A stretch of 64,000 bases of DNA from Macrostomum lignano (GCA_002269645.1 NIVC01003887.1:1-64000); one strand, 5' to 3'. Shown: positions 3,337-38,328, counted from the stretch's first letter. Numbers and translations are program-made. The notes: generated from the sequence alone by a model not told the origin.

Positions 3337-6300
3337 ATGGCAGAGCGACTGAGATCATCTTATGACGATCATCTTATGACGAGAGAGGATGTTGTCAAAC
3401 GGGTAAGTACAGTTAAAGAGATAAAATTGAAGCATATTTATATTGGAGGCTTAATTGCAGTTGCAAGAACTGGCTCCCATGTTTGATTGTGCAGCTTGGG
3501 TGCCTCAATTGCAGCTGACTAAAGTCGCTGACGAACTTCTTTTTGAGCAAAGCATGATTCAGCTGACTCTGCCGGACCCCACCAACCGGACAAGCGTCGG
3601 AGACTCACCAGCCGATCTTCACAATCTCGCCCAGGACGTCATCCAAGGAGACTTCGGACAGGTGCGGCGGCTGGCAACGCGCCAGCTGGTCACCAGCGCT
3701 GATGCAGCTCGTCGGACCGTCTTCATGCTGGTGGCCGACGCTCCTGAGACTCCCGTGCACACTGAAAAGTGCATCTTGTACTTATTTGAGCTGGGCGCGA
3801 ACCCCAAGGCGGCTGACGCGAATGGCGACACGGCTGCGCACCTGGCAGCCCGGCGGGACCACCTGCGGCTGCTAACGCTGCTATCGTTCAATGCGAAGTG
3901 GCTGCTGAACGACAACGGCGCCACTCCGCTGATGGAGGCGGCGCGGACTGGAAGCTGGAAATGCGCCAAGCACCTACTGCACCTGCTCAGGCAGGAAAGG
4001 TTCAATGAGTGCGGGAAGCACGAAAACTCGAAGAGGTCGCGGCTGCTCGAACTGAAGAATCGCGAGGGTCGGAAGGCGTCGGACCTGGCGAGGCTCAGCG
4101 GCCACTCAGAGCTGGCCAGCTACATCGACCGGTGAGTGAGCAGTTCGCTGCTGTGTCCAGCAAGTTTTGCAGCATTCGGCTGGGGTGGCCAGAGCTGCAG
4201 TCTCAGGCCAGCCAATCAGAGCCAGTCAGCTGAGCTTCTCTCTGGCTGACTGCTTGATGGGCGAGAGCTGTGATTGGCTGGCTGCCTCCCAGCCAATGGG
4301 GTGCCGGTTGATCTCAGTCGAGAATGGAAGCTGTAGGGCCTTGGTGTGCAGTGATAGTGTGTGGGTTGTGCTGCAGATGGAGAACTGGGAGGCTGTGCGT
4401 GAGTGCTTTGTTATTGTAAGATGGAAGGAAACTCATGCTGCAGAAATGGAAAATGAGAGGGAGTGTGAGACGTCGGATGCGCTCTCGCCAATGCTGATTG
4501 TTGCAGAGCTACTGCAGGCCTCTTGGAAAGTGCATCTGCGAGCAGCTCAGAAAGTTAGGGATTTTTGCTTACTAAATTTATCATGGAAATAGTATTGCGC
4601 AACTTAAAGTTTTATTTGACAATCGTACGCTCGTAATTGTTGGAGTCAAGAAAATTGCGGATTTGCTTCTAATTTTTGCTGCTGCAGGGAGATGCGGCTA
4701 ATTGTGAATGCACGTGGCAGGATCTCCGGCCTGACAGCTCAGGTGAGTGACATCTGAGGTGCCGATGCGGCTGCAGCTGAGCAGCTGTGCTCAAATTTCT
4801 CACTTGCCATTGCAGGAGGAGGCAGATCGACAGGAACTGCAGCGGCTGGCCGATTCGGGCAACTCGGGGGGGGGGGGCTGCGGCGAGCAGCGACTCGCAA
4901 CAGCTGCGACCTGCCTGAGAGTTGGAGTCACACTGCGTTGATGTGGGCTGCTCAGAACAGCTCGTGCAGTGAGGAGGCTCTGTGGAAGCAGCTGGTGCAG
5001 CTGGGTGACCCTACCTCTGCGGATATATCTTCTACCACTTGCCTGCACTCGGCAGCACGTTCTGGCAATTTTGCCGCAGCCTTTGATCTGCTGGCTGCCG
5101 GAGCTTCCGCCAATGCCAGGAATGACTTCACTCCACGCCCCTCATGCTGGCAGCCTTCTTTGCGCCCCCCGCCACCGCCGCCGCAGTCGGTCGGGTTCTG
5201 CTGGACTTAGGGGCGGATTGGAGCCTGAAGGACAGAGACGGCAGGACTGCGCTGGATTTGGCCACACAAAAGGGAAACAGCGGACTGGCTGAGCTGCTGC
5301 GTGGGTGAGTTTCCATGGCGACTTGAGAATGTCTCTCTGACTTTGATTTATCATTGATAAACAAGGTGCTGTAATTTTTGATTGAACATACTGTTGTAAC
5401 CAGCGTAGTATAAATCTGCTGATTTTGAATCCTAGAAACTATACATGTATGTGAAAACATTATAAAATCCAAAAGTTATTCCGCGAAAAAGGAGACTGAA
5501 GACAAGAGTAAGGATAGAGGAGAGCGAGAAGAAGATTTAGGAGAGGACAGAAGGCTTTAAATCTTAATTTAACACGAATTTACTTCACTTTTGTTTACCT
5601 CCATATTAGCTAAAAACACTTTTTTTTTAGTATGACTTTAGACTCAAGAAAGTATTAAAAATAGTTCAGATGATTGGAATTCAGCAGGATAAAAATCCGG
5701 AAGTTTCAACAGTATTTTAGATTTTAAAAAATCTTTTTATAACTAAAATAAAAATTAAAAAAATCTTTGTTATAAGCAAACCTTGCGCATTTCTCAATTC
5801 CAATTTTCTCAATTGGCGTGCTCAAAAAACATTCCTGCACGCCTATTTAGTTTAAAATGACTGAGTGGGATTCAGGAGTTTGCAGTGCAGTTTGACTCCC
5901 GATTGCAATTTAAATAATAAGGTTTAGTTTCCTGCGAGCTCTGAAAAACCAGCCACCATTTTGCTGTTTAAGTTCAAAATAACATGGATAGTTCCTTTTG
6001 TGGTCCTCTTCTGTATTATTGCAAAAAGATCAACTTTGCCTGCTCGACACTTAAAACAAATGAAAATTGATAAAGTGATACAATAAACCAAAAAGCGTGG
6101 ACTCTCTGAATTCCCTAACAGACTGTGCATCGCCTATTTAGGTACGACGGCAGGATTTACTTCGACGAGCCTCTGGAACTGCCGTAAGTTCCTTCAGCAT
6201 CTTTCAGTTCCCACAGCACATACTCGTAACTACCGCACACACAGCTACAGCATACACAGCTACAGCACACAGCTACAGCACACAGCTACAGCACACACAG

Positions 6301-7440
6301 CTACAGCATACACAGCTACAGCACACAGCTACAGCACACACAGCTACAGCACACTCAACTACAGCACACAGCTACAGCACACTCAACTACAACACACAGC
6401 TACAGCACACACAGCTACAGCATGCAAACTAACGTTAACTGCCTCAATTCGCATCCCCTCAGACCCGAAGGCCCCCCGTTCCTGGAGCGCTGGGACGTCG
6501 TTCGTCTCATCGGCCGCGGAGGCTTCGGCGAAGTCCACGAAGTTCGAACTGACACGGGCGTCACGTGCGCTGCCAAGACTCTCAGACTGCCTGTGCAGCT
6601 CGGTGATGAGCTGCTCTCTATGAGCTCAGAGATCCACAGAGCTGTCGAGAGCGAAAGAAACCTGTGCCGACTGCGGCATACCAACATCGTCAGGTTCTTG
6701 CACATCGCTCAGCCGGAGCCCGCCACAGTCGTTGTGTTCATGGAGCTGCTGAACGGCCGGAGCTTGGAGAGGTTTATCGACAAAAAGCCGCTCGACGAGG
6801 TGACGATTCGAGACTTCAGCAAGCAGGTGAGCATTGTGCATCCTTGATGCTCCTGTTACATGCTCCCATGAATGATGACTGCTCACTGACCGACCGCTCG
6901 CAGATCTGCCGCGCGCTGCTCTACCTGCACAGCCGGCAGCCGCCCGTGATCCACAGAGACATCAACTGCTCCAACATAATTGTTTGTGCTGACAACACGC
7001 GAATCAAGCTGATCGACTTCGGCCTGTCAATCAAGCTGGAGCAGTCAGTCAGCCACATCTTAACCTCAACTCAGTCACCCAAAGGCACTCTGAACTTCAT
7101 GGCGCCAGAGCTGCTCGGAGCAGGAGAGTCGGACAGCGTGCAGTACAGCAGAGAGTCAGACATCTGGGCTTTCGGCTGCTCGGTATATCAGATGGTGTCT
7201 GGCGCGAGGCCGTTTGCAGACGCCAGGAACTTTTTAGGAATGGCCCAGCTGATTGAGAGGAGGGGCGCCCCCGTCCTGCCCGACGGCCGATCCGCAGAGC
7301 TGAGGGACTTCCACAGCCGCTGCACCGCCAAGGACCGCAGAAGAAGAAAATCGGCACAGGAGCTGCTGGAGCACGAGTTCCTGACGGACAGGAAGCTGCA
7401 GCTGGGATTTTTTAGCTCGTTTTTCGGTGCATGGAAATGA
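3337..7440 (+). CDS. Ankyrin-repeat Ser/Thr kinase, paralogue 1 (two apparent -1 frameshifts in exon 4)
   Basis: Phase-compatible GT-AG exons: 3337-3402, 3515-4131 (ANK block A), 4688-4742, 4816-5304 (ANK block B), 6142-6183, 6463-6826, 6904-7440. Kinase motifs GRGGFG, AAK, HRDINCSN, DFG, APE, DIWAFG. Frame breaks at the G12 run (about 4866-4877) and at about 5128. The first exon is less certain. Confidence 0.8.
6229..6422. repeat. (CTACAGCACA[CA]CAG)n-type minisatellite in intron 5 of paralogue 1
   Basis: Tandem 12-14-nt units between the donor at 6184 and the acceptor at 6462. Confidence 0.9.
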
Positions 7441-8037: not shown

Positions 8038-10256
8038 TAACCCTGGATCATCCATCCCATCATTCACCCAGCGAATTGACCCCTCATCATTCACCCAGCA
8101 TCCCGAGCATCAACCCTATAACGCAACCTTTCTGCTAAAAATCCGACTGCTAAATGTGGATTTCCTTTGGAATTAGCAGTGGTTTCAGAAAAGAAGCAAC
8201 CCAACACACAGGGAGCGTCTCAATAGCTGCTGTTTGCAGGCACTGTTCAGCCCGATTGAGCTGCTTCTTGCCTCAAAATGGGAGCCGATAAAGAATCATC
8301 CGAACATATGGGGATGAGCACAGCAGCGCAGCTCGCAGACCTGGGCATGTTTGAATCACCTTTATTCGCTGATTCCCGACTCAGATGATTCAACTCATTT
8401 TGTCGATTTTTAGTCGTATTTAAGCTTTGTGACTGTATCTCTTGTTTTGTGGATCATTCTTATTCTTATTTTATTTCCGTTTTTTCCTATAAAAATCGGT
8501 GCAATCGTGTAAAGATTCAACTTTACCATGCTATACCTAAATATATGCGCTATATTAGTGTTCCGATCTGCTGTCGTGTCCAGATGAGCTTCAAGTGAAT
8601 GAACCAAGTAATCAGTTAACTGTTGCCTCGAGCATAGAAAAATGATATAGCAAGTCATGAAGTTGTTGCGAATTCATGGAAGCAAGCAATCCATGTCCTG
8701 CGAAGTTGAAGGTCCTCAGGCTGTTCTGCCGCGAAATCGGACTGTACACGTTTCAGCTGGGATCTGATGAAGCAGAGAGCGGCTATCGCGGAGTAAAGCA
8801 TCTTCTTGATGGCACAAGTGTTTTTCATTGGTTTCCCCAGAAGTACATTGCATTGAAATAATTTACTCATACATTGGAGTTCATTCATGACTGAGGCGGG
8901 GTTGGTGCCTTCATCTTTGCAGGCTGGGTGGGCACCTGCATTGACTGAAAACAAAGTCTTGACAGTTGAATTCGGATGCATTGCAGCACAAATGCTTCAC
9001 TTCATCATGTTGCAGAATTGCAATTCATGCCAAGCATTAGCAATATGTTGGCTTCTCCAAAAACCTCCTAGTGAGTTTTGCTAAAGTTTTTTTCGGAATC
9101 GTATCGAAAGACTCTGCAGCGCCTCGTGCCAGTTTTTTTGCTTTCCAAGAGCAGCGAAAAGTCGCTTAAAAGTTTCTTAAAAGCAGATAAGCCGGACTCG
9201 AGGCAACTTGGCGCTGGAGTTTGCCTGCCTGCGGCTCTGTGTATGCCCAAATGCTTAAAGGTGAAGCATTCCTAAAGTATGAATTCTTTGAAAATTTGTG
9301 ACTGTTTCAAGCTGAATCACGTGCATTTGAGTGTTTATCAGATAAACTTCTTCGGCCCTGCTAACTTGTCTGCAAATTTTCTATGTATTAGCCATGAGTG
9401 CTGATAGTTTCATTGTTTTAAAGAATGTAATGTCAGATCCATGGCTTGCAGAGGCTGGGAGGCTGTCTGTGGAGTAACAGATCCATGAGCAGGTGTGTAG
9501 AATTATTATTTTAGCTGGAAACCCTACCACATGCTAGCATTTATTTGTTCAAATGCCTTGCTGAGCATGTTAACTGTCGAAGTCACCTGACCAAGGCAGG
9601 CGGAGGTCGAACTGGACACTGGAGTGCAAGCGAGATGTCTCACGAAAACGATGACCAAACAAAAGCTTCATATTCGCAGCAAGGCCAGACCGAAAAAGGC
9701 AAAAGTGCCACAGGTCGCACCTAAAATCAGACCCAGGAGAAAACAAGATAAGTTGAGCCACCGAAGCTGCAACGCAGATCAGAGCAAGCTCATCCCGATA
9801 AGAGAGTCGCGAAGAGCTGGCATGAGAAGAGCAGCCATGCAGCCCAAAAATCAGCTGACAGTGACGTCAAGCTGGGTCGAAAGCAACACTGGGCAAGACA
9901 GCTGCCTGAGCAGCTGTTTAACTGTTGACTATTTTGAGTAGCTGTGCAATCGTTGAAAGCTTTGTGATAAGATAAACATTGCCTGTCGCTTGCTGACATC
10001 ACAGTGAGCTGGGCACTTTGACTGCAGCGGAAAGCTCAAGAATCGCGCAATTGGGCTGTTCAGCAATCCTTTGGTAATTTTGCGCTTCGCAAGTGATCAT
10101 TGTTTAACTTGTTCCATTTCATACTACTATCAGGACTTATTAAAGCTGAATGTGCTTATTTTTGTTTAAATTTGAAACCGAAAAAATGAATCTGAGAAAT
10201 TATTTTCGCTAGTATTTTGTTTTGATGAGAGTGCAAAAAAATTCTTAAGATGGTTG

Positions 10257-10850
10257 AGATTCTGAGATGCTGGGAGATTCTGAGATGCTGAGAGACTCTG
10301 AGATGCTGAGAGATTCTGAGATGCTGAGAGATTCTGAGGTGCTGAGAGATTCTGAGGTGCTGAGAGATTCTGAGGTGCTGAGAGATTCTGAGGTGCTGAG
10401 AGATTCTGAGGTGCTGAGAGATTCTGAGATGCTGAGAGATTCTGAGGTGCTGAGAGATTCTGAGATGCTGAGAGATTCTGAGGTGCTGAGAGATTCTGAG
10501 GTGCTGAGAGATTCTGAGATGCTGAGAGATTCTGAGATGCTGGGAGACTCTGAGATGCTGAGAGATTCTGAGATGCTAAGAGACTCTGAGATGCTGAGAG
10601 ATTCTGAGATGCTGAGAGATTCTGAGATGCTGAGAGATTCTGAGGTGCTGAGAGATTCTGAGATGCTGAGAGATTCTGAGGTGCTGAGAGATTCTGAGAT
10701 GCTAAGAGACTCTGAGATGCTGAGAGATTCTGAGATGCTGAGAGATTCTGAGATGCTGAGAGATTCTGAGATGCTGAGAGATTCTGAGATGCTGAGGATT
10801 CTGAGGTGCTGAGAGATTCTGAGATTCTGAGAGATACTGAGCGATTCTGA
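10257..10850. repeat. 18-bp minisatellite (GAGATTCTGAGA/GTGCTGA)n
   Basis: About 30 tandem units; explains the low-complexity ORFs at 10166-10915. Confidence 0.95.
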
Positions 10851-11915: not shown

Positions 11916-12504
11916 TACAAATAATTTAAGAACCTTAGCAAATTCTGCATACACCTATTTCGGCGTTTCCGAGGCACAAAGCTTCAGGCCCAGTGCAGGG
12001 TTCTTTAAACCAGTCGAACAGAATGCTTTTGTGAAGGCAAACATCGCTAAATACACGTAAACAAAGCGGGCCTTCAAATAGTTTTGCATTATTTGATCCC
12101 GCCTCTTTCACTAGTTGGACTATCAGCTTCACCAGCTAAGCGTAGCCCACCTTCCCCAGACTCGGAGGACTCTTCTGGTGATCCGGACCGCCACAGGCCA
12201 CATCCGGATGGCTCACCCAGCATCGTTGAGCAACCCGCTCCCCTCATCAGCAGTGACTGCTTGAACCTGGTCCTTTGCCTAAAGCTATTTAGTGGCCTTA
12301 AACTCCAGGCAATCACGGAAGTTCATCAATATTGACTGTCAGCCCTATACCAACTCTACTGAGGTCTGTTGCCATGCGGATCCTTCTGATTCCGCCCTTA
12401 GGCAGCGGTGAAGATTGACTCAATGTACGTCTGAGGAGGAAACCCTCACCTGTAGCTCTTGTTTTTTCTACAACTTGAGCTGATCGTTCCATATCCACCA
12501 AGCC

Positions 12505-12862
12505 CTGCACTCAGACACCAAGCACTCATACACCCAACCCTCAGACACCCAGCCCTCAGACACCCTGCACTCAGACACCCAGCCCTCAGACAGCCAGTCC
12601 TCAGATACCCAGCACTCAGACACCCAGCCCTCAGATACCCAGCACTCAGACACCCAGCCCTCAGACACCCAGCCCTCAGACACCCAGCACTCAGACACCC
12701 AGCACTCAGACACCCAGCACTCAGACACCTAGAACTCTGTCACCCACCACTCTGACACCCAGCACTCAGAAATCCAGCACTCAGATACCCAGTACCCAGA
12801 CACCAAGCACTCAGACACCCAGCCCTCAGACACTCAGCTCTCAGACACCCAGCACTCAGACT
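12505..12862. repeat. 15-bp minisatellite (CAGCA/CCTCAGACACC)n
   Basis: More than 20 tandem units; produces the RHPAL-repeat pseudo-ORF. Confidence 0.95.
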
Positions 12863-16455: not shown

Positions 16456-16463
16456 TCCCGTCA

Positions 16464-20517: not shown

Positions 20518-21479
20518 CTTATTATCTACGCAAGCTTGGCACGTTAGGTTTGAGTTATTGTCAATTGAGTTATGGGCAATCTGTGTACGCTTAAATTATG
20601 TCATCGCTCTTGCGCACGTAGCATCGCTTTACAATATAAATACAGACATCAGAGCTTTGATAGCTCTCACGTGTTCTTCTACCACTTTAAACAAGCAGCA
20701 TAGCTGATCTATCACACTCCGGAGAACAGAAACTCAAACACCGACGACAGCGGAGAACCGTGGAGGCTCCACCATGCGGCAGTACCAAACTCGAGTTGGT
20801 GCATCACCAGACAGGCTACAACAAAATGGAGGATATGATATTAGTGCGTACGCACTTTCGCTTAAGAACTGGTTTCGATGGCCAAAGTGCTGCGTCAAGA
20901 AGTTGCTGCCAAGCCAGGAAGGTGAAGATAAACCACACAGTAATTAAAAACGCAGCCACAGAAATGAGCTGGATTTGCTTTTTTACTTAAAACTTTCGAC
21001 AACAGCGTTTTAGGATATCACACAAAAATATGAGTCAAATCACAAACCGAATTTCTTTCAATGAATAAAATGAATAATTAATAAAACATTTGGGATTAAT
21101 TCATTTCAGCTTTGATACCTTCAATTGATAATTTTTAATCTCTTTAAAAAATCACTCAATATTGCTAACTACTTTCTCGTTTAATCTGACTGCACACTCA
21201 GGGCTCAATCTGATTCACGCCTGCTCAATGCACTACTAACTCAAGTAGCCACGCACTGATATTGCAGCAGTTCTGCTGTTACCTCAGAGCCAATGGGAGA
21301 GGCAGAAAGCTGGGCAGAGGCGACCGCACAAGCCAGCAAAAGCAGCCGCAATCTGAGCAGGCAGTTTGAGAAGGAGTTCGCTGCAGCTGCTCCAGGGCCA
21401 ATAAAATCTGCTGCAGAGGCGGCCGGTGCCCTGCCGGACTCTCGGGCTGAGCTGAGACACCTGCGACTGAGCTCCAGTC

Positions 21480-24400
21480 ATGATGGAGCCATGGATATTA
21501 CCATTTCCTGACGAAAAAGTAAGTAGAGTTAAGTTAAGCAAATGCAAGCTTAGTAATATTTTATTCTCAAATGCAGTTGCAGCAACTCACTCACATGTTT
21601 GAATGTGCAGCTTGGGTGCCTCAATTGCAGTTGCAGAAACTCACTCAGCCGGACCCCAGCAACCGGCCAAGCGTCGGAGACTCAACAGCCGATCTCCACA
21701 CTCTCGCCCACGACGTCATCCGAGGTGACTTCGGCCAGGTACGGCGGCTGGCAACGCGCCAGCTGGTCACCAGCGCTGATGCAGCTCATCAGACCGTCCT
21801 CATGCTGGTGGCCGACGCTCCTGAGACTCCCGTGCAGACTGAAAAAAGCATCTTGTACTTATTTGAGCTGGGCGCGAACCCTAAGGCGGCTGACGCGAAC
21901 GGCGACACGGCTGCGCACCTAGCAGCCCGACGGGACCACCTGCGGCTGCTGACGCTGCTGTCATTCGATTCGAAGTGGCTGCGGAACGACAACGGCGCCA
22001 CTCCGCTGATGGAGGCGTCGCGGACTGGAAGCTGGAAATGCGCCAAGCACCTGCTGCACCTGCTCAGGCAGTGGAGATTCAATGAGTACATAAATCACAG
22101 AAACTCGAAGAGGTCGCGGCTGCTCGGACTGAAAGATCCTGAGGGTCGGACGGCGTCGGACCTGGCGACGCTCAGCGGCCACTCGGAGCTGGCCAGCTAC
22201 ATCGAGCGGTGAGTGAGCAGTTCGCTGCTGTGTCCATCAAGTTTTGCAGCATTCGGCTGGGGTGGCCAGAGCTGCAGTCTCAGGCCAGCCAATCAGAGCC
22301 AGTCAGCTGAGCTTGTCTCTGACTGACTGCTTGATGGGCGAGAGCTGTGATTGGCTGGCTGCCTCCCAGCCAATGGGGTGCCGGTTGATCTCAGTCGAGA
22401 GTGGAAACTGTAGGGCCTCGGTGTGCAGTGAGAGTGTGTGGGTTGAGCTGCAGATGAAGAACTGAGAAGCTGCAGTGCATGAGTGCTTTGTGAAACATTT
22501 TGAGACTCGTGCTGCAGAAATTCAAAATGAGCTGTGTGTGAGAAGTGGGATGCGCTCTCGCCAATGCTAATTGTTTCAGAGATGCCCAGTCCTCTTTTAG
22601 ACTCCATCTGCGAGCAGCTCAATTAATTAGGAACTTCTGTTTACAAAATTTATCATGAAAATTAATTCTCTCGTACAACTTAAAATTTATTTTTAGCGAT
22701 CATAGTAGTTGTGAGAAAACTTTAAATTCGCTGCTCATTTTTGCTGTTGCAGGGAGATGCGGCTGGATGTAAAACGTTTTGGCGTAATTTCCGGACTGAC
22801 AGCCCAGGTGAGCGGCATCTGCGGTGCCGATGCGGCTGCAGCTGAGCAGCTGTGCTCAAATTTCTTGCTTGCCTTTGCAGGAGGAGGCGGATCGACAGAA
22901 ACTGCAGCGGCTGGCTGAGGCGGGCGACTCAGCGGGGCTGCGGCGAGCGGCGACCCACGGCAGCTGCGACCTGCCTGACAGTTTTGGTTCCACCGCACTG
23001 ATGTGGGCAGCTCACAACAGCTCGTGCGCTGATGAGGCTCTGTGGGAGAAGCTGGTGCAGCTGGGTGACCCCACGTTTGAGGATTTTCTATCTGACAGTT
23101 GCCTGCACCATGCAGCTAATGCTGGCAATTCTGCCGCAGCCTCCGCTCTGCTGGCTGCTGGAGCCTCCGTTAATGCCAAGAATCACTGTGAATACACACT
23201 CCTCATGGAGGCAGCGATTTTTGCACCCCCCGCCACCGCCGCCGCAGTCGGTCATGTTCTGCTGGACTCAGGGGCGGATTGGAGCCTGACGGACAATAGG
23301 GGAATGACTGCGCTGGATTTGGCCACACAGCAGCAAAATAGCGAACTGGCTGAGCTGCTGCGTGGGTGAGTTTCCATGGCGACATAGAATGTCTCTCTGA
23401 CTTTGATTTCTCACGGATAAAAATTATTGCCGTAATATATGATTGTGTTGTGAGCTGCGCCTCACAATGCGCTTGCCGCGACCCCTGCGCTCTCCGCCTC
23501 TCCTCTCCCTGCGGCTGGCTTATTCTGGCTTGCCCCCCCCCCCTCCGTCTTAAGCTGCTATTCTTCATTTTTTCCGTTTTCATTTTTATTAGTTGGAATC
23601 TTTTCGTCTCTCATCAGGCTAGTCCAATAATGTCTCTCGCCGCGGAGGCACCTGATTGGCTAGCCTTCCCCCTTCTTTCTCTCTCGAAGTTTAAATCTGT
23701 GAGTCCCCCCCCCAACCTCCATCCCTGTGTTGCTTAGCCCCACCCAGCCCCTTGCTCACCCAGTATTTATGTGTGCTGAATAGCAGCATCCTCATCCACA
23801 GTTCCTTCTTGCCGTAGGGCTGGACGAGTGCCTGTCCGCTCAAAGCCTCTCCAATTTCGCTTCGAAGTGTCTTTACGCCTCGGGGTCGCTTATCATACCC
23901 ACCAGGCTCTGGGCAGTCCAGCACCCGAACTCCAGCAGAAAAGACAACCCTTCAATATTGAGCAGCTGACTGCAGTTGCTCTGAGTGGGCATTTTTACAT
24001 TTTTGTTGTTTAAATGGGCAGCAGGGACTGACTGAGCTGCATTGAGGGATTTTACAGTGCAGTTTGACTGCAGATTGCCAGTTGAATATTAATTTTCAGC
24101 TGCCTGCGAGCTATGAGACACCAGCAAGTATTTTTCTGTGACATTTGAGTAAAACAGCAACCAGAGTATTTCTTTTTTGTTGCTTTTCTCTGCCTCACCA
24201 CTCACATGAGGTGGCTCTCACCTGAATTTCACTGACTTCAGACTCCGAACTGCCTATTTAGGTATGACGGCAAGATTTACTTCGACGAGCCTCTGGCAGT
24301 GCCGTGAGTTCCCACAGCTATACAGCACACACGGCTACAGCACACACAGCTACAGCACACACAACTACAGAACACACAGCTACAGCACACATAGCTACAG

Positions 24401-25518
24401 CACACACAGCTACAGCACACAGCTAAGGAACACACAGCTACAGCACACACCTACAGCACACAGCTACAGCACACATAGCTACAGAACACACAGCTACAGC
24501 ACACACAGCTACAGCACACAGCTACAGCACACAGCTACAGCATGCAAATTATCCCTCATTGCCTCAATTCGCATCCCTTCAGACCCGAAGGCCCCCTGTT
24601 CCTGGAGCGCTGGGACGCCGTTCGTCTCATCGGCCGTGGAGCCTTCGGCGAAGTTCACGAAGTTCGAACTGACACGGGCGTCACGTGCGCTGCCAAGACT
24701 CTCAGACTGCCTGTGCAGCTCGGTGATGAGCTGCCCTCTGTGAGCACAGAGATCCACAGAGCTGTCGAGAGCGAGAGAAACCTGTGCCGACTGCGGCATC
24801 CCAACATCGTCAGGTTCTTGCACATCGCTCAGCCGGAGCCCGACACAGTCGTTGTGTTCATGGAGCTGCTGGACGGCCGAAGCTTGGAGAGGCTTATCGA
24901 CAACAAGCCGCTGGACGAGCTGACAATTCGAGACTTCAGCGAGCAGGTGAGTATTGTGCATCCTTGATGCTCCTGTTTTATCTTCCCATGAACGATGACT
25001 GCTCACTGACCGACCGCTTGCAGATCTGCCGCGCGCTGCTCTACCTGCACAGCCGGCAGCCGCCCGTGATCCACAGAGACATCAACTGCTCGAACATAAT
25101 CGTTCGTGCTGACAACACGCGAATCAAGCTGATCGACTTCGGCCTGTCAATCAAGCTGGAGCAGTCAGTCAGCCACATATCAGCCTCCACTCAATCACCC
25201 AAAGGCACTCTGAACTTCATGGCGCCAGAGCTGCTCGGAGCGGGAGAGTCGGACAGCGTGCAGTACAGCAGAGAGTCGGACATCTGGGCTTTCGGCTGCT
25301 CGGTCTTCCAGATGGCGTCCGGCGCGAGGTCGTTCGCCAATGTCAGAAGCATGTTACGAATGGCCCAGCTGATTGATAGGAGCGGCGCCCCTGCCCTGCC
25401 GGACGGCCGGTCCGCAAAACTTCAGGATTTCTACAGCCGCTGCACCGCCAAGGACCGCAGGAAGAGAAACTCGGCACAGGAACTGCTGCAGCACGAGTTT
25501 CTGGCTAGTCTGACTTGA
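21480..25518 (+). CDS. Ankyrin-repeat Ser/Thr kinase, paralogue 2 (apparently intact, 685 aa)
   Basis: Exons 21480-21518, 21631-22208, 22753-22807, 22881-23365, 24262-24303, 24583-24946, 25024-25518 sum to 2058 nt with matching phases (0,2,0,2,2,0) and canonical GT-AG. About 7-8 ankyrin repeats in two blocks, then GRGAFG, AAK, HRDINCSN, DFG, APE. Confidence 0.85.
24312..24542. repeat. CTACAGCACA-type minisatellite in intron 5 of paralogue 2
   Basis: Homologous to 6229-6422. Confidence 0.9.
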
Positions 25519-26029: not shown

Positions 26030-27062
26030 AGCAGCAACAACACCAAACCAAAATACGCTGTCAGCATAACAGGGCGCGTTTCAGGGCCGAATTCGGTGCG
26101 TCAGCAAGCAGGCAGTCGACGAAACGCCGATTGTGCACCTGCCCCTGCCTGTAAGGTGCCTGCAGCGTCAGCAGCAGCACCTCCTGCACCGGTTGTCGGC
26201 AGTACGTCTCGGCGCGGATGTGTTGGCCTGCAAGCTGGAGTCGCCGACGGCGCAACAGGTCGCTTGGACGGACGAGGCCGGCGCAGTGATACAAAGCCGC
26301 TTTGGTCACTCGCTCGTAGCCCATCTTGAAAGCAGCGCGCAGCAGGTTAGCATGCGCCGCGTTAACTTGTTGCTCGAGCGACTCCATTAGCGTCCAGGTC
26401 TCGGCGTTGTACGGCAGGACGGTCTCGACCACTGTCTGGAACAACGCTGCCCTCTGGCGGTCAGGTAAGGCCTCGGACTGCAGGACTGCCCTCATAGAAC
26501 GAAAGGCAGCCCAGGCAAGCCCGCGGTGACGTCGCAAATCTTTGCGGACGTCAAGAACTAGACCGCTGAGGTTGATGAACTGCTTACAGCGCGGAAGCTT
26601 TGTCGCCTGTCCATCAGCGCCTCGGCACAAAATCGCAGACTCTATGTCATCTGGCATGCAGAGCACGACGGTCTTCTGCACGTTGACCACCAGGCCGACA
26701 CTCGCCGCAACAGCAACTAACCGCCATGATGGCGGTAATCAGCTGCTCTGGCACGTTGTACGCAGGAAACACCTTTGGGAGCACACACATAACGACTAAG
26801 TCGAATGCCTTCTTGAAATCTAGGATATGAATATGACAATCAAAATCGATTGGAGCGTCCTCGCTTCCTCGATGACTCGGCGAAGAGCTATGAAGTAGGA
26901 TCTGCGTCATTGTGCCGCGATGAGGCCGTAAGCCGTTCTGCTCAGGATGCAAGTACGGATCCAGCACCGGCTGCAACCGCGATAGCAACATCCGGTTGAA
27001 CAGCTTTGCAGCGCAGGACTGAAGGCAGACACCTCGATGCTCCTCAAGCCTCGTGGTGCCCA
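26030..27062 (-). mobile_element. 5'-truncated, internally deleted RTE-like LINE reverse transcriptase relic
   Basis: HRGVCLQSCAAKLFNRMLLSRL...EQNGLRPHR, DFKKAFD, GLVVNVQKT, FQTVVETVLPYNAETWTL. The QG and YADD segments are missing. Confidence 0.8.
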
Positions 27063-27075
27063 GCTTTAAGCCCGG

Positions 27076-30000
27076 ATTTTAAGCTACATGATCCTTCACT
27101 TGAACTGCATGGATTTCAAGCTACATGATCCTCTACCTGAACTGCATGGATTTTAAGCTACATGATCCTTCACTTAAACTGCATGGATTTCAAGCTACAT
27201 GATCCTTCACTTGAACTGCATGGATTTCAAGCTACATGATCCTTGACTTGAACTGCATGGATTTTAAGCTACATGATCCTTCACTTGAACTGCATGGATT
27301 TTAAGCTACATGATCCTTCACTTGAACTGCATGGATTTCAAGCTACATGATCCTTCACTTGAACTGCATGGATTTTAAGCTACATGATCCTTCACTTGAA
27401 CTGCATGGATTTCAAGCTACATGATCCTTCACTTGAACTGCATGGATTTTAAGCTACATGATCCTTCACTTGAACTGCATGGATTTTAAGCTACATGATC
27501 CTTCACTTGAACTGAATGGATTTTAAGCTACATGATCCTTTACCTGAACTGCATGGATTTAAAGCTACATGATCCTTCACTTGAACTGCATGGATTTTAA
27601 GCTACATGAACCTTCACTTGAACTGCAAGGATTTTAAGCTACATGATCCTTTACCTGAACTGCATGGATTTAAAGCTACCAGTACATGATCCTTCACTTG
27701 AACTGCATGGATTTTAAGCTACATGATCCTTTACCTGAACTGCATGAATTTTAAGCTACATGATCCTTCACTTGAAGTGCATGGATTTTAAGCTACATGA
27801 TCCTACACTTGAACTGCATGGATTTTAAGCTACATGATCCTTCACTTAAACTGCATGGATTTTAAGCTACATGATCCTTCACTTGAACTGCATGGATTTC
27901 AAGCTACATGATCCTTCACTTGAACTGCATGGATTTCAAGCTACATGATCCTTCACTTGAACTGCATGGATTTTAAGCTACATGATCCTTCACTTGAACT
28001 GCATGGATTTTAAGCTACATGATCCTTTACCTGAACTGCATGGATTTAAAGCTACCAGTACATGATCATTCACTTGAACTGCATGGATTTTAAGCTACAT
28101 GATCCTTTACCTGAACTGCATAGATTTTAAGCTACATGATCCTTCACTTGAACTGCATGGATTTTAAGCTACATGATCCTTCACTTGAACTGCATGGATT
28201 TTAAGCTACATGATCCTTTACCTGAACTGCATGGATTTTAAGCTACATGATCCTTCACTTGAACTGCATGGATTTTAAGCTACATGATCCTTCACTTGAA
28301 CTGCATGGATTTCAAGCTACATGATCCTTCACTTGAACTGCATGGATTTTAAGCTACATGATCCTTTACCTGAACTGCATAGATTTTAAGCTACATGATC
28401 CTTTACCTGAACTGCATGGATTTTAAGCTACATGATCCTTCACTTGAACTGCATGGATTTCAAGCTACATGATCCTTCACTTGAACTGCATGGATTTTAA
28501 GCTACATGATCCTACACTTAAACTGCATGGATTTCAAGCTACATGATCCTTCACTTGAACTGCATGGATTTTAAGCTACATGATCCTTCACTTGAACTGC
28601 ATGGATTTTAAGCTACATGATCCTTTACCTGAACTGCATGGATTTTAAGCTACATGATCCTTCACTTAAACTGCATGGATTTCAAGCTACATGATCCTTC
28701 ACTTGAACTGCATGGATTTTAAGCTACATGATCCTTCACTTGAACTGCATGGATTTTAAGCTACATGATCCTTCACTTGAACTGCATGGATTTCAAGCTA
28801 CATGATCCTTCACTTGAACTGCATGGATTTTAAGCTACATGATCCTTCACTTAAACTGCATGGATTTCAAGCTACATGATCCTTCACTTGAACTGCATGG
28901 ATTTCAAGCTACATGATCCTTGACTTGAACTGCATGGATTTTAAGCTACATGATCCTTCACTTGAACTGCATGGATTTTAAGCTACATGATCCTTCACTT
29001 GAACTGCATGGATTTCAAGCTACATGATCCTTCACTTGAACTGCATGGATTTTAAGCTACATGATCCTTCACTTGAACTGCATGGATTTCAAGCTACATG
29101 ATCCTTCACTTGAACTGCATGGATTTTAAGCTACATGATCCTTCACTTGAACTGCATGGATTTCAAGCTACATGATCCTTCACTTGAACTGCATGGATTT
29201 TAAGCTACATGATCCTTCACTTGAACTGAATGGATTTCAAGCTACATGATCCTTTACCTGAACTGCATGGATTTAAAGCTACATGATCCTTCACTTGAAC
29301 TGCATGGATTTTAAGCTACATGAACCTTCACTTGAACTGCAAGGATTTTAAGCTACATGATCCTTTACCTGAACTGCATGGATTTAAAGCTACCAGTACA
29401 TGATCCTTCACTTGAACTGCATGGATTTTAAGCTACATGATCCTTTACCTGAACTGCATGAATTTTAAGCTACATGATCCTTCACTTGAAGTGCATGGAT
29501 TTTAAGCTACATGATCCTACACTTGAACTGCATGGATTTTAAGCTACATGATCCTTCACTTAAACTGCATGGATTTTAAGCTACATGATCCTTCACTTGA
29601 ACTGCATGGATTTCAAGCTACATGATCCTTCACTTGAACTGCATGGATTTCAAGCTACATTATCCTTCACTTGAACTGCATGGATTTTAAGCTACATGAT
29701 CCTTCACTTGAACTGCATGGATTTTAAGCTACATGATCCTTTACCTGAACTGCATGGATTTAAAGCTACCAGTACATGATCATTCACTTGAACTGCATGG
29801 ATTTTAAGCTACATGATCCTTTACCTGAACTGCATAGATTTTAAGCTACATGATCCTTCACTTGAACTGCATGGATTTTAAGCTACATGATCCTTCACTT
29901 GAACTGCATGGATTTTAAGCTACATGATCCTTTACCTGAACTGCATGGATTTTAAGCTACATGATCCTTCACTTGAACTGCATGGATTTTAAGCTACATG

Positions 30001-33000
30001 ATCCTTCACTTGAACTGCATGGATTTCAAGCTACATGATCCTTCACTTGAACTGCATGGATTTTAAGCTACATGATCCTTTACCTGAACTGCATAGATTT
30101 TAAGCTACATGATCCTTTACCTGAACTGCATGGATTTTAAGCTACATGATCCTTCACTTGAACTGCATGGATTTCAAGCTACATGATCCTTCACTTGAAC
30201 TGCATGGATTTTAAGCTACATGATCCTACACTTAAACTGCATGGATTTCAAGCTACATGATCCTTCACTTGAACTGCATGGATTTTAAGCTACATGATCC
30301 TTCACTTGAACTGCATGGATTTTAAGCTACATGATCCTTTACCTGAACTGCATGGATTTTAAGCTACATGATCCTTCACTTGAACTGCATGGATTTCAAG
30401 CTACATGATCCTTCACTTGAACTGCATGGATTTTAAGCTACATGATCCTTTACTTGAACTGCATGGATTTTAAGCTACATGATCCTTCACTTGAACTGCA
30501 TGGATTTCAAGCTACATGATCCTTCACTTGAACTGCATGGATTTCAAGCTACATGATCCTACACTTAAACTGCATGGATTTAAAGCTACATGATCCTTCA
30601 CTTGAACTGCATGGATTTTAAGCTACATGATCCTACACTTAAACTGCATGGATTTTAAGCTACATGATCCTTCACTTGAACTGCATGGATTTTAAGCTAC
30701 ATGATCCTTTACCTGAACTGCATGGATTTCAAGCTACATGATCCTTCACTTGAACTGCATGGATTTCAAGCTACATGATCCTTCACTTGAACTGCATGGA
30801 TTTCAAGTTACATGATCCTTCACTTGAACTGCATGGATTTCAAGCTACATGATCCTTCACTTGAACTGCATGGATTTTAAGCTACATGATCCTTCACTTG
30901 AACTGCATGAATTTTAAGCTACATGATCCTTTACCTGAACTGCATAGATTTTAAGCTACATGATCCTTTACCTGAACTGCATGGATTTTAAGCTACATGA
31001 TCCTTCACTTGAACTGCATGGATTTCAAGTTACATGATCCTTCACTTGAACTGCATGGATTTCAAGCTACATGATCCTTCACTTGAACTGAATGGATTTT
31101 AAGCTACATGATCCTTCACTTGAACTGCATGGATTTTAAGCTACATGATCCTTTACCTGAACTGCATAGATTTTAAGCTACATGATCCTTTACCTGAACT
31201 GCATGGATTTAAAGCTACCAGTACATGATCCTTCACTTGAACTGCATGGATTTTAAGCTACATGATCCTTTACCTGAACTGCATGAATTTTAAGCTACAT
31301 GATCCTTCACTTGAAGTGCATGGATTTTAAGCTACATGATCCTTCACTTGAACTGCATGGATTTCAAGCTACATGATCCTTCACTTGAACTGCATGGATT
31401 TTAAGCTACATGATCCTACACTTAAACTGCATGGATTTCAAGCTACATGATCCTTCACTTGAACTGCATGGATTTTAAGCTACATGATCCTTCACTTGAA
31501 CTGCATGGATTTTAAGCTACATGATCCTTTACCTGAACTGCATGGATTTTAAGCTACATGATCCTTCACTTAAACTGCATGGATTTCAAGCTACATGATC
31601 CTTCACTTGAACTGCATGGATTTTAAGCTACATGATCCTTCACTTGAACTGCATGGATTTTAAGCTACATGATCCTTCACTTGAACTGCATGGATTTCAA
31701 GCTACATGATCCTTCACTTGAACTGCATGGATTTTAAGCTACATGATCCTACACTTAAACTGCATGGATTTAAAGCTACATGATCCTTCACTTGAACTGC
31801 ATGGATTTTAAGCTACATGATCCTACACTTAAACTGCATGGATTTTAAGCTACATGATCCTTCACTTGAACTGCATGGATTTTAAGCTACATGATCCTTT
31901 ACCTGAACTGCATGGATTTAAAGCTACATGATCCTTCACTTGAACTGCATGGATTTCAAGCTACATGATCCTTCACTTGAACTGCATGGATTTCAAGTTA
32001 CATGATCCTTCACTTGAACTGCATGGATTTCAAGCTACATGATCCTTCACTTGAACTGCATGGATTTTAAGCTACATGATCCTTCACTTGAACTGCATGA
32101 ATTTTAAGCTACATGATCCTACACTTAAACTGCATGGATTACAAGCTACATGATCCTTCACTTGAACTGCATGGATTTTAAGCTACATGATCCTTCACTT
32201 GAACTGCATGGATTTCAAGCTACATGATCCTTCACTTGAACTGCATGGATTTTAAGCTACATGATCCTTCACTTGAACTGCATGGATTTTAAGCTACATG
32301 ATCCTACACTTAAACTGCATGGATTTTAAGCTACATGATCCTTCACTTGAACTGCATGGATTTTAAGCTACATGATCCTTTACCTGAACTGCATGGATTT
32401 TAAGCTACATGATCCTTCACTTGAACTGCATGGATTTCAAGCTACATGATCCTTCACTTGAACTGCATGGATTTCAAGCTACATGATCCTTCACTTGAAC
32501 TGCATGGATTTTAAGCTACATGATCCTTCACTTGAACTGCATGGATTTTAAGCTACATGATCCTTCACTTAAACTGCATGGATTTTAAGCTACATGATCC
32601 TTCACTTGAACTGCATGGATTTCAAGCTACATGATCCTTCACTTGAACTTAATGGATTTTAAGCTACATGATCCTTTACCTGAACTGCATGGATTTAAAG
32701 CTACATGATCCTTCACTTGAACTGCATGGATTTTAAGCTACATGATCCTTCACTTGAACTGCATGGATTTCAAGCTACATGATCCTTTACCTGAACTGCA
32801 TGGATTTTAAGCTACATGATCCTTCACTTGAACTGCATGGATTTTAAGCTACATGATCCTTCACTTGAACTGCATGGATTTTAAGCTACATGATCCTTCA
32901 CTTGAACTGCATGGATTTCAAGCTACATGATCCTTCACTTGAACTGCATGGATTTTAAGCTACATGATCCTTTACCTGAACTGCATGGATTTTAAGCTAC

Positions 33001-33105
33001 ATGATCCTTCACTTGAACTGCATGGATTTTAAGCTACATGATCCTTTACCTGAACTGCATGGATTTTAAGCTACATGATCCTTTACCTGAGCTGCATAGA
33101 TTTCA
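27076..33105. repeat. 37-bp satellite array (about 160 units) with higher-order structure
   Basis: Unit CATGATCCTTCACTTGAACTGCATGGATTT(T/C)AAGCTA, head-to-tail with no spacers. Rare variants recur at a 1714-bp spacing. Confidence 0.98.
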
Positions 33106-34805: not shown

Positions 34806-37800
34806 ATGTCAAGCTCTTCAGACGATTCAAATTCCACTTGGGAAGACGAAGAAGTAACTGCTGAGTTCCCTGACTATGCGGTAAGTTAAAGCCACAGAAA
34901 TTTACGATTAGTAACTCCGGTAGCTCGTAAATTCAAGTCTACTCAAAATCTTCCATGCTTAGATGTAGGTCACAGGGTGTGTCAATTTCAGCTGCAAGAA
35001 CTCACTCAAATTGAAGTGATCCTACTTCTAGCTTATGCCCAGTTCTATGCTTTAGTCTAATGCGAACATCAGAAGGTTTTTTCTATCTGGAACACACAGC
35101 ACATGCTTGTGTCCCAGTAAAGATCCCAGTGCGTCAAGCGTTAGAACACATCTAACGGTAGCGTTCAGTGAGAAGGAAGCTCTCGCTCCTTTTTCTCTTT
35201 CTGCTACTCCTCCCTTTTCACTCGCTCTCTCCCTCTCGCTCTCCTACTCAAACTTACCTTCTGAACTCCTAGTCTAAAGTAATCTATTCAGACGATATCC
35301 AGAGTAATCATCTCACCCCACCGTAGAATAAAAAGACTGACGAATCGAGCCTAGACTACAATATCTCAGCCTAACTCAGACATCAGCTGAAAACATGTCA
35401 AGATATCGATGTACAAAAAAGTGTGGTTGGCTCTCCTTTTCACTTTAAATTGTTTTATACAATTGCCTGTTTAACGTCTGTTTAAAGCTGTAACGATAAG
35501 AGAAACTATAGAAATATGACATTCATGCTAAGGGTTGAAGATTGAGAGAAACCTATCGAACATTCGACTTAATTAGATGATTAGAAGCATATACGATTAG
35601 ATGTAGACGTACTTAAAAATCTTTGAATGTGCAGCTTGGGTGCCTCAATCGCAGTTGCAGCAACTCACTCAGCCGGACCCCACCAACCGGGCAAGCGTCG
35701 GAGACTCACCAGCCGATCTCCAGACTCTCGCCCACGACGTTATCCGAGGTGACTTCGGACAGGTACGGCGGCTGGCAACGCGCCAGCTGGTCACCAGCGC
35801 TGATGCAGCTCGTCGGACCGTCCTCATGCTGGTGGCCGACGCTCCTGAGACTCCCGTGCACACTGAAAGTGCATCTTGTACTTATTTGAGCTGGGCGCGA
35901 ACCCCAAGGCGGCTGACGCGAACGGCGACACGGCTGCGCACCTGGCAGCCCGTCGGGACCACCTGCGGCTGCTGACACTGCTGTCGTTCGATGCGAAGTG
36001 GCTGCGGAACGACAACGGCGCCACTTCGCTGATGGAGGCGGCGCGGACTGGAAGCTGGAAATGCGCCAAGCACCTGCTGCACCTGCTCAGGCAGCAGAGG
36101 TTTAGTGATTGCTGGAAGCAGGGAAACTCAAAAAGGTTGCAGCTGTTCGGACTGAAGGATCGCGAGGGTCGGACGGCGTCGGACCTGGCGAGGCTCAGCG
36201 GCCACTCAGAGCTGGCCAGCTACATCAAGCGGTAAGTGAGCAGTTCGCTACTGTGTCCGTCAAGTTCTGCTTAATCGTTCAGAAATAGCTCACATTTTCA
36301 TAATCACAATCTTGGCTGTATGAGAGAAGAGAACCAAATTACAGCTTAAAAGTTCATCATGAAACATTTCCCGGAAGGGTTCAATTAGAAAACGCATTTT
36401 ACTTTCCTTTTTGCTGCAGCGAGATGCGCCTGGCTGTGGATGTCGGTGGCAGGATCTCCGGCCTGACAGCCCAGGTGAGCGGCATATTCGGTGCCGATGC
36501 GGCTGCAGCTGAGCAGCTGTGCTCAAATTTCCCGCTCGCCTTTGCAGGAAGAGGCGGATCGACAGGAACTGCAGCGGCTGGTGAGGGCAGGCGACTCGGC
36601 GGGACTGCGGCGAGCGGCGACCCGCGGTAATTCTGATTTGCCCAATGATTGGGGTCAAACCGCATTGATGTGGGCAGCTCAAAACAGCTCGTGCAGTGAT
36701 GAGACTCTGTGGGAGCAGCTGGTACAGCTGGGTGACCCCACCTGTGCGGATATTTTGGCTGAAAATTGCCTGCACCAGGCAGCCAAGGCCGGGAATTCTG
36801 TCGCAGCCTCCGCTCTGCTGGCTGCCGGAGCCTCCGCCAATGCCAGGGAAGGAGCTGAGTTCACACCGCTTATGTGGGCTGCTTTCACGGCACCGCTCCA
36901 CACCGCCGCTGCAGTCGGTCGGGTTCTGCTGGACTCAGGCTCAAATTGGAGTCTCAAGGACTGCTATGGCATGACTGCGTTTGATTTGGCCAGAAAGAAA
37001 GGAAAGAGCGAACTGGCTGAGCTGCTTCGAGGGTGAGTTTTGATGAAAATGTTGTACCAATATCACCAACCGGCATTGCTCAGAATCCCACAGACCAAGA
37101 TAAGAACACTAAGATCATTTCGAAAGCTTGATTGTTCGCAAAACACGATTCAAATTTCTACACGTTTCAGGCTCAAAGACGAGAAATTTTTCGATGAGCC
37201 TCCGTGAGTTTTTTTCAGCGCAGACACATGTATGTAAGCATACTCTTGAACTGCCGAAGAAAGTCTTAACTCAATTCGCATCCCCTCAGACCCGAAGGCC
37301 CACCGTTCCTGGAGCGCTGGGACGCCGTTCGCCTCATCGGCCGCGGAGCCTTCGGCGAAGTTCACGAAGTTCGAACTGACACGGGCGTCACGTGCGCTGC
37401 CAAGACTCTCAGACTGCCTCTGCAGCTCGGTGATGAGCTACCCTCTGTGAGCACAGAGATCCACAGAGCTGTCGAGAGCGAGAGAAACCTGTGTCGACTG
37501 CGGCATCCCAACATCGTCAGGTTCTTGCACATCGCTCAGCCGGAGCCCGACACAGTCGTTGTGTTCATGGAGCTGCTGGACGGCCGAAGCTTGGAGAGGT
37601 TTATCGACAACAAGCCACTGGACGAGCAGATGATTCGAGACTTCAGCGAGCAGGTGACCATTGTGCATCCTTGATGCGGGGAGGGAGCGCCAGTCTCTGC
37701 GGGGGAGGGAGCGAACCTCCTCCCTCGCAGTCTCCTGTTCCATGTTTCCATGAATGATGACTGCTCACTGACCGACCGCTCGCAGATCTGCCGCGCGCTG

Positions 37801-38328
37801 CTCTACCTGCACAGCGGGCAGCCGCCCGTGATCCACAGAGACATCAACTGCTCGAACATAATTGTTTGTGCTGACAACACGCGAATCAAGCTGATCGACT
37901 TGGGCCTGTCAATCAAGCTGGAGCTGTCAATCAGCCACATCTCAGCCTCCTCTCAATCGCTACCCAAAGGCACTCTGAACTTCATGGCGCCAGAGCTGCT
38001 CGGAGCGGGAGAGTCGGACAGCGTGCAGTACAGCAGAAAGTCGGACATCTGGGCGTTCGGCTGCTCGGTCTTCCAGATGGCCTCCGGCGCGAGGCCGTTC
38101 GCGAACGCCAAAAGCCTGTTAGAAATGGCCCAGCTGATCGACAGGAGGGGCGCCCCCGCCCTGCCAGACGGCCGGTCCGCAGAGCTGAGGGATTTCTACA
38201 GCCGCTGCACCACTAAAGACTACCGGAAGAGAAGCTCAGCACAGGAGCTGCTGAAGCACGAGTTCCTGACGGGAGGGAAGCGTATGCGGAAGGATTTTCC
38301 CTTTGCGCTTTTTGGCGATAGAAAATAA
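34806..38328 (+). CDS. Ankyrin-repeat Ser/Thr kinase, paralogue 3 (one apparent -1 frameshift at about 35866; DLG for DFG)
   Basis: Exons 34806-34880, 35655-36231, 36420-36474, 36548-37032, 37171-37203, 37290-37653, 37786-38328 have the same phases as the paralogues. ACTGAAAGT versus ACTGAAAAGT in copy 1. An in-frame 5' extension via exons at about 34500-34555 and 34756 onward is possible. Confidence 0.8.

Follow-up and report, generated by a model that had tools for sequence, protein, structure and literature searches.

Several described proteins carry ankyrin (ANK) repeats and a kinase fold in one chain. ILK and TNNI3K have N-terminal ANK repeats followed by a TKL kinase or pseudokinase (ILK being the pseudokinase), while ANKK1/RIPK4 and DAPK1 combine ANK repeats with a Ser/Thr kinase of the TKL and CAMK groups, placed at the N-terminus, in death or inflammatory signalling. 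RNase L joins one nine-repeat ANK block to a pseudokinase and a C-terminal KEN nuclease. Among the platyhelminths ANK-caspases were gained, FADD and the DED-caspases were lost in flatworms, and a caspase with a kinase-like prodomain was described from Macrostomum lignano in 2024 in Genome Biol Evol (PMC11463336). Here we analyzed 64,000 nucleotides of the M. lignano genome (GCA_002269645.1, NIVC01003887.1:1-64000; the whole stretch is called the window below), which contain a tandem array of genes from a family specific to Macrostomum. Every unit encodes a cytosolic protein of about 685 aa with two ANK blocks (ANK-A and ANK-B) followed by a protein kinase.

The order of domains is the same as in ILK and TNNI3K, but the kinase of the window protein has its best matches in the STE group, whereas theirs belong to TKL, and no orthology was seen; ILK moreover has a single ANK block and a pseudokinase, whereas the window protein has two blocks and intact catalytic residues. 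In ANKK1/RIPK4 and DAPK1 the order is reversed, their ANK repeats being C-terminal or central. Like the window protein, RNase L is a single cytosolic protein with N-terminal ANK repeats and then a kinase-fold domain; the window protein differs from it in having a second ANK block, in keeping its catalytic residues and in lacking a KEN domain. The platyhelminth ANK-caspases carry a caspase (Peptidase_C14) after the ANK repeats, whereas the window genes end at the kinase. The initial annotation of the window had not recognised the architecture as that of a standard metazoan family, which stands in so far as no orthologue was found elsewhere and is too strong in view of the ANK-then-kinase precedents TNNI3K, RNase L and ILK. 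Uncharacterised M. lignano proteins in GenBank and UniProt already show the architecture, and a related kinase-caspase is in print since 2024 (PMC11463336). New here are the finding that the N-terminal cassette is common to ANK-caspase and ANK-kinase-caspase genes, and the location of the ANK-B variation on the canonical target-binding positions.

Gene model of the three copies

On the + strand, the list of open reading frames (ORFs) shows ankyrin-like and kinase-like ORFs three times as direct repeats, at about 3.3-7.4, 21.5-25.5 and 35.6-38.3 kb. The repeat units were delimited by self-blastn as 3139-5384 with 6119-7396, 21283-23445 with 24239-25503, and 35619-38281; transposon and satellite DNA lies between the copies, and no fourth copy was found in the window by tblastn with the assembled protein as query. 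Copy 2 was built by hand from seven exons (39, 578, 55, 485, 42, 364 and 495 nt), which give an open frame of 685 aa with intron phases 0,2,0,2,2,0, donors that are all GTAAGT or GTGAGT, and acceptors that are all AG after a pyrimidine-rich tract. The donor and acceptor sequences of copies 1 and 3 match those of copy 2. The fusion of three ORFs per locus through the 55-nt and the 42- or 33-nt exons, as the initial annotation had proposed, is thus borne out, with exon 5 read as 42 nt in copies 1 and 2 and as 33 nt in copy 3, and each locus is one gene, not three. Its further claim of conservation of the intron phases in all three copies stands for the splice sites, which are kept everywhere, but does not extend to the reading frames, since only copy 2 is intact as assembled.

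The product of each unit runs ANK-A, linker, ANK-B, linker and protein kinase. The first linker has 19 residues, from the 55-nt exon and the split codon preceding it, and the second has 14 residues (42-nt exon) or 11 residues (33-nt exon). Kinase exon 6 begins in phase 2 and has no start codon context of its own. Neither a signal peptide nor a hydrophobic (membrane) segment was found in the predicted protein. An alternative in-frame acceptor at 21577 would extend copy 2 to 703 aa; exon 2 of the M. lignano proteins opens with LQ(Q/E)LTQPDP, and for this reason the 685-aa model is favored.

The closest public proteins are BOX15_Mlig013011g1 (P0003, 690 aa), Mlig017273g1 (P0004, 704 aa) and Mlig015152g1 (P0005, 699 aa), which are 82-85% identical to copy 2 across 95-98% of the query and are labelled in the database only as 'Protein kinase domain-containing protein', uncharacterised. 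All three contain the predicted junction peptides ASYIER/EMRL..ISGLTAQ/EEADRQ, ELLRG/YDGKIYFDEPLA.P/PEGP and DFSEQ/ICRALLYLH (the slash marks the junction), and they share the seven exons, the mini-exon peptides and the HRDINCSN motif of the window genes. The gene of P0003 lies on contig NIVC01001149.1 (locus L001) in seven exons, including those of 55 and 42 nt. The M. lignano annotation was made from RNA-seq with StringTie, TACO, a de novo transcriptome and TransDecoder (PMC5730564), so that the junctions are transcript-supported in these relatives and the proposed splicing of the ANK exons to the kinase exons is confirmed in transcript-based models. None of the three is identical to a window copy; the best protein identity, 85-92%, and the best flank identity to M. 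lignano Mlig_3_7, 92%, lie well outside the roughly 2% by which the subgenomes of M. lignano differ (PMC10733133). In UniProt entry P0008 the 42-nt exon is missing, either because it is skipped or because the model is in error. As a side observation, P0001 and P0002 of M. lignano have two or three kinase domains behind one ANK cassette, through either the merging of tandem neighbours in the models or a duplication of kinase exons within the gene.

Locus L001 also carries a second copy at 19866-22468, 4 kb downstream of the P0003 gene. Over 5.9 kb its flanks match those of copy 3 at 92% identity, and as a counterpart of copy 3 it has no exon 1, with exon 2 and the main exons intact.

Copies 1 and 3 are disrupted as assembled. 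Exon 4 of copy 1 is 489 nt long instead of 485, with 5 extra nt relative to copy 2 in a G12 run at 4866 and a second frameshift (-1 nt) near 5128 outside any homopolymer, and the spliced frame meets a stop soon past the G12 run. In copy 3, one nt is deleted in an A run at 35866; its similarity to the other copies begins at 35619-35622, and no homology to the block of promoter and exon 1 was found. Masking of the frameshift sites leaves both copies open up to their terminal stop codons, with all splice sites and motifs present except for DLG in place of DFG in copy 3. Because the copies read so cleanly, the frameshifts may stem either from the assembly or from recent lesions; erroneous indels in homopolymers are typical of assemblies made from long reads. 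For the missing first exon of copy 3, the spliced leader (SL) of M. lignano is known to end in ATG (PMC8629364), and intron 1 is in phase 0, so that trans-splicing at the acceptor of exon 2 would give an in-frame start. We put this forward as a hypothesis for the start codon of copy 3; the SL sequence itself is absent from the window.

Domains, the variable surface and the shared cassette

The kinase was identified by Pfam (Pkinase PF00069, 172 bits against a cut-off of 31.7, E 2e-50, residues 431-699 of the 703-aa model). Its nearest kinases in the PDB are MAP3K2 (1.7e-29), TNIK (1.8e-28), ASK1 (1.3e-27) and PAK1 (1.8e-26), at about 30% identity. MAP3K2 comes first among the 60 best PDB matches, 59 of which belong to the STE group (the exception is GCN2), and no RIPK is among the 60 listed. 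A less derived sister subfamily matched plant and mollusc MAP3K-like kinases at 32-37% identity. By these comparisons the kinase appears closest to the STE group, MAP3K-like but divergent at about 30% identity, and the predicted product of two Ank blocks and a STE/MAP3K-like kinase agrees with the initial annotation. From the nearest kinase domains, those of MEKK2/3, ASK1 and MAP4K/PAK, the window protein differs by its ANK N-terminus and by an Asn for the catalytic-loop Lys.

The motifs read in the kinase are GRGAFG, CAAK, ESERNL, HRD, DFG and APE. Conservation was assessed on 14 family members with identity down to 48%: the catalytic Lys, the alpha-C Glu, the Asn (N545) and DFG are invariant, the Arg-Asp of HRD and APE are at least 90% conserved, and the Gly loop is present in nearly all. 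In the catalytic loop, HRDINCSN, an Asn stands where HRDxKxxN has its Lys; conservation of this Asn within the subfamily is at least 90%, and more distant ANK-kinase subfamilies retain HRDIKxSN. The protein ends 4-20 residues past kinase subdomain XI. No domain follows the kinase in Pfam (no KEN domain), and none of PB1, CRIB, CNH or other STE accessory domains was found in the predicted protein.

The ANK part was detected by Pfam as two separate regions, with Ank_2 at 81.8 bits (E 5.5e-23, three stretches), Ank_4 at 65.8 and Ank at 59.8 bits. AlphaFold places helical repeats at 30-205 and 225-385 with a predicted local distance difference test (pLDDT) score of 85-97 over residues 20-390, the exon-3 linker included, so that the two blocks are modelled as one ordered unit. 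Foldseek returned rigid double fusions of designed ankyrin repeat proteins (DARPins), tankyrase ARC clusters and full-length RNase L.

The two blocks vary very differently. Nonsynonymous divergence (dN) between the copies is 0.17-0.19 in ANK-B, 0.06-0.08 in ANK-A and 0.02-0.07 in the kinase exons, and over 54 close family sequences the mean column entropy rises from 0.45 bits in ANK-A through 0.57-0.69 in the kinase to 0.95 in ANK-B. Four repeats of ANK-B were anchored on TxLxxAA, which defines 24 positions corresponding to those randomised in designed ankyrin binders (DARPin-type). The entropy of ANK-B is 2.20 bits at these 24 positions versus 0.74 elsewhere (permutation p < 5e-5), and dN between paralogues is 0.41-0.80 at the 24 codons versus 0.09-0.19 elsewhere; the same contrast in ANK-A is weak (0.61 versus 0.43 bits, p 0.06). 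As read from these alignments, the scaffold of ANK-B is conserved and its predicted binding surface, the one by which ankyrins usually hold their targets, is hypervariable.

Compared with one another, the window copies have a ratio of dN to synonymous divergence (dS) of 0.40-0.50. For copy 3 against its L001 counterpart the ratio is 0.31, with 33 nonsynonymous and 34 synonymous differences (binomial p 1.6e-6 versus neutrality), which indicates that the copy 3 type of gene is under constraint. In the same gene pairs, dS is 0.05-0.11 in kinase exon 6 versus 0.23-0.64 in ANK-B, and this several-fold gap between exons suggests gene conversion among the paralogues in the conserved exons.

The region of exons 2-5 forms a cassette (ANK-A, linker, ANK-B, linker, with mini-exons of 55 and 42 or 33 nt and phases 2,0,2,2 in the introns that follow), which was found in all three window copies, in the L001 gene, in a kinase-caspase gene (L002) and in a caspase gene (L003). 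M. lignano paralogues with the same N-terminal region end in a caspase (P0022, P0025), in a kinase and a caspase (P0027, P0135) or in Ras (P0020). The gene of P0025 on L003 has exons 2-5 with both mini-exons and then caspase exons, and over the cassette that they share with the window genes, P0022 and P0025 show 71-73% identity. The gene of P0027 on L002 has the same seven exons with a caspase exon 190 bp downstream; P0027 and P0135 are of the form ANK-ANK-kinase-caspase, and their kinase motifs HRDINCNN and HRDINGNN are of the same subtype. The seven-exon plan is retained in paralogues at 46% identity. In a neighbour-joining tree of the cassette, the kinase, caspase and kinase-caspase members interleave, from which it follows that the effector was swapped or lost repeatedly; the deepest clades hold kinase-caspase forms. 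The cassette is thus a portable module. In the window, tblastn with three family caspase domains found no caspase exon or remnant (nothing better than E 1.6).

The family is large in M. lignano and was found nowhere else with a one-to-one relationship. The first protein search matched about 55 M. lignano clusters, and a search with the kinase alone more than 40, among which are many fragments of 240-340 aa that hold nothing but the kinase; the public sets also hold many ANK-only entries of 404-436 aa. The best matches outside Macrostomum reached 85-89 bits. A profile search of 1.84 billion representatives gave a top list dominated by giant multi-ANK proteins, and nine of the ten long-stretch matches looked up were from M. 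lignano. The tenth was the RNA-seq contig P0173 (Logan SRR28338164/SRR28338163; L004/L005), of 877 aa with a long ANK array and a kinase, 43% identical to and colinear with the M. lignano long-ANK kinase P0190; it is the only family-like match looked up that is not labelled Macrostomum. The protein, kinase-only and profile searches gave no one-to-one orthologue outside Macrostomum, and no orthology to a conserved MAP3K was found (identity at most about 37%), which leaves the lineage-specific status proposed by the initial annotation in place. On this evidence the family appears to be a Macrostomum-specific expansion with dozens of paralogues. The literature search returned no paper on the kinase-only family, nor any under the M. 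lignano gene IDs or the SRA run IDs.

Readings of the family

The reading that we favor, and which we consider on balance probable, is that the ANK part serves as a variable recognition module through which a kinase or caspase effector is recruited or activated. ANK-B would serve as a diversified recognition surface for a partner or ligand specific to each paralogue, with ANK-A and the linkers as the constant part; binding would recruit or cluster the protein, after which the kinase molecules would activate one another by trans-autophosphorylation of the Ser/Thr-rich activation loop; activation of the caspase paralogues would come about through induced proximity. The family as a whole may be a set of ANK-based signalling proteins, specific to flatworms, that acts in cell death, stress or immune-type responses. 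By analogy, the ANK cassette would have the adaptor role held elsewhere by death-fold domains in RIPK/IRAK kinases and initiator caspases, and RNase L may serve as a precedent in which an ANK sensor is coupled to a kinase-like dimerisation domain. The word sensor in the initial annotation is interpretive, and it receives some support from the hypervariable surface predicted for ANK-B and from the cassette shared with caspases.

Several points weigh against the reading of a recognition module. As assembled, copies 1 and 3 have broken frames, and the second copy of L001 is without a gene model in the transcript-based annotation. At the ANK-B surface, the pairwise Nei-Gojobori dN/dS is noisy, saturated and not clearly above 1 (pooled 0.74 versus 0.43 elsewhere, pairs 0.2-5.6), and relaxed constraint on loops could yield the same pattern in ANK-B as positive selection. 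The change of Lys to Asn in the catalytic loop may make the mechanism or the activity of the kinase atypical, and the kinase part of the AlphaFold model, built from a 14-sequence alignment, has low confidence. RNase L (4oav) is the sole natural protein in the Foldseek list that aligned at full length (680 columns), at a TM-score of about 0.2 and 17-18% identity; the resemblance is one of architecture alone and not of family membership. Ankyrin repeats are not known to form homotypic assemblies of the death-fold kind, and the comparison with death folds is an analogy.

A bolder form of the proposal is that the ANK-A/ANK-B cassette replaces death-fold adaptors altogether, so that the genes would be a germline repertoire of cytosolic receptors, each with a ligand-specific ANK-B coupled to one effector, kinase or caspase, or to the two together. 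The ligands would be pathogen products, danger signals or self partners, and ANK-ANK-kinase-caspase would be the ancestral form from which the window genes lost the caspase. This we think rather unlikely. It is possible, though in our view somewhat unlikely, that the array consists mostly of decaying tandem duplicates, copies 1 and 3 being pseudogenes and at most copy 2 functional, with the ANK-B variability as a product of relaxed constraint. The two frameshifts of copy 1, the frameshift and absent exon 1 of copy 3, its DLG in place of DFG, the interruption of the array by a young long terminal repeat (LTR) element and a 6-kb satellite, the out-of-frame or truncated M. lignano models P0021, P0017 and P0023, and the fairly high overall dN/dS all fit with decay; yet both copies are otherwise open and keep their splice sites and catalytic motifs, the homopolymer indels are of the kind that assembly produces, and the dN/dS of copy 3 against the L001 copy falls significantly below 1. 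The variability is, moreover, concentrated on the 24 surface positions of a conserved scaffold, which uniform decay would not bring about.

Distinctly less likely still is an ordinary MAP3K-type kinase whose ANK part is autoinhibitory or a scaffold, with stress, MAPK or fast-evolving reproductive roles, and for which the sharing with caspases is incidental exon shuffling. The kinase is indeed nearest to MAP3K2, ASK1 and the MAP4Ks, and ANK domains regulate kinases in ILK and TNNI3K; lineage-specific kinase expansions are also common in flatworm genomes (bioRxiv 10.1101/2024.02.05.578899). The absence of orthology to any conserved MAP3K speaks against it, as does the repeated tie of the cassette to caspases, which includes single genes with ANK, kinase and caspase together, and the hypervariable ANK-B argues for many targets and not for one intramolecular contact. 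That the ANK and kinase parts are separate genes and the joined model an artefact is highly improbable, for all the ANK-only and kinase-only entries of M. lignano: the ANK-only models P0017 and P0023 stop exactly at the exon-5 boundary, as truncated models would, exon 6 starts in phase 2 without a start codon context of its own, several loci have full-length models built from transcripts, and the seven-exon plan persists at 46% identity. That ANK-only isoforms are genuine products was rejected as the principal reading, as the models stop at the end of exon 5 or enter exon 6 out of frame. Many of the public ANK-only and kinase-only entries are probably fragments of these genes.

Window features and meaning of the family

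Coordinates of the three gene copies and of their 5' flanks in the window
Feature	Position	Strand	Remarks
Copy 1, 5' flank	3139..3336	+	common to copy 2; putative promoter/5' untranslated region, includes GGCCAATAAAA; self-blastn 3139-5384 versus 21283-23445, 82.6% identity
Copy 1, exon 1	3337..3402	+	66 nt; ATG; donor GTAAGT; phase 0
Copy 1, exon 2	3515..4131	+	ANK-A; acceptor homologous to copy 2; in-frame alternatives 3461, 3563
Copy 1, exon 3	4688..4742	+	55-nt linker (REMRLIVNARGRISGLTAQ)
Copy 1, exon 4	4816..5304	+	ANK-B; 489 nt; two frameshifts
Copy 1, exon 5	6142..6183	+	42-nt linker (YDGRIYFDEPLELP)
Copy 1, exon 6	6463..6826	+	kinase N-lobe
Copy 1, exon 7	6904..7440	+	kinase C-lobe and stop codon
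Copy 2, 5' flank	21283..21479	+	common to copy 1
Copy 2, exon 1	21480..21518	+	39 nt
Copy 2, exon 2	21631..22208	+	ANK-A; 578 nt
Copy 2, exon 3	22753..22807	+	55-nt linker
Copy 2, exon 4	22881..23365	+	ANK-B; 485 nt; hypervariable putative binding surface
Copy 2, exon 5	24262..24303	+	42-nt linker (YDGKIYFDEPLAVP)
Copy 2, exon 6	24583..24946	+	kinase N-lobe (GRGAFGEV, CAAK, ESERNL)
Copy 2, exon 7	25024..25518	+	kinase C-lobe (HRDINCSN, DFG, APE) and stop codon
Copy 3, exon 2	35655..36231	+	ANK-A; 577 nt; 1-nt deletion at 35866; exon 1 not found upstream
Copy 3, exon 3	36420..36474	+	55-nt linker
Copy 3, exon 4	36548..37032	+	ANK-B; 485 nt
Copy 3, exon 5	37171..37203	+	33-nt linker (LKDEKFFDEPP)
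Copy 3, exon 6	37290..37653	+	kinase N-lobe
Copy 3, exon 7	37786..38328	+	kinase C-lobe (DLG replaces DFG) and stop codon

Intron 5 of copies 1 and 2 contains a repeat of 15 bp, (CTACAGCACACACAG)n, at 6230-6422 and 24321-24542, which produces long spurious ORFs, and intron 5 of copy 3 has 86 nt without this repeat. Between copies 1 and 2 lies an LTR retrotransposon on the - strand (16189-20517), whose LTRs at 16189-16455 and 20251-20517 have 267 bp each and are 100% identical, with a single gag-pol ORF of 1262 aa that contains aspartyl protease, reverse transcriptase, RNase H and integrase; the element appears to have inserted very recently. Between copies 2 and 3, an AT-rich satellite of 6 kb at 27074-33103 repeats a 37-bp unit about 162 times with 93% matches. 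Two neighbouring ORFs at 26061-26991 on the - strand resemble parts of a LINE-type (non-LTR) reverse transcriptase; of the two, 26061-26690 was scanned and has no Pfam match at E 1e-3.

At 58145-63903 on the + strand there is a Maverick/Polinton-like set with a PC4-like ORF, an integrase core with a chromodomain and an adenovirus-type cysteine protease (Peptidase_C5). The set extends toward the end of the window, and some of its ORFs are without a Pfam match; as a guess, the ORF at 63250-63903 could be a packaging ATPase and some of the others capsid proteins. An ORF or exon at 43234-43797 on the + strand weakly matches the start of the ANF_receptor domain (E 2e-4, below the gathering score), which suggests a gene like those of class C G protein-coupled receptors. 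Other tandem repeats are an 18-bp minisatellite of 33 copies at 10256-10841 and a 15-bp repeat of 24 copies at 12503-12861, both with long repetitive ORFs on both strands, (TATC)n with 172 copies at 47870-48556, and a 20-bp satellite of 62 copies at 52167-53412.

The genes are a clean example of an effector swap by exon shuffling downstream of a phase-2 mini-exon. The triggers of regulated cell death and cytosolic immunity in flatworms are little known, and the family is a testable candidate for their upstream layer. RNA interference works in M. lignano. Transgenesis is established there too (PMC5730564). As flatworms are without FADD and DED-caspases (PMC11463336) and the ANK cassette is carried by both kinase and caspase genes, these genes may supply the upstream layer that is missing there. 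If the proposal of a receptor repertoire were true, it would be a new family of innate-immune or cell-death receptors in a regenerating animal.

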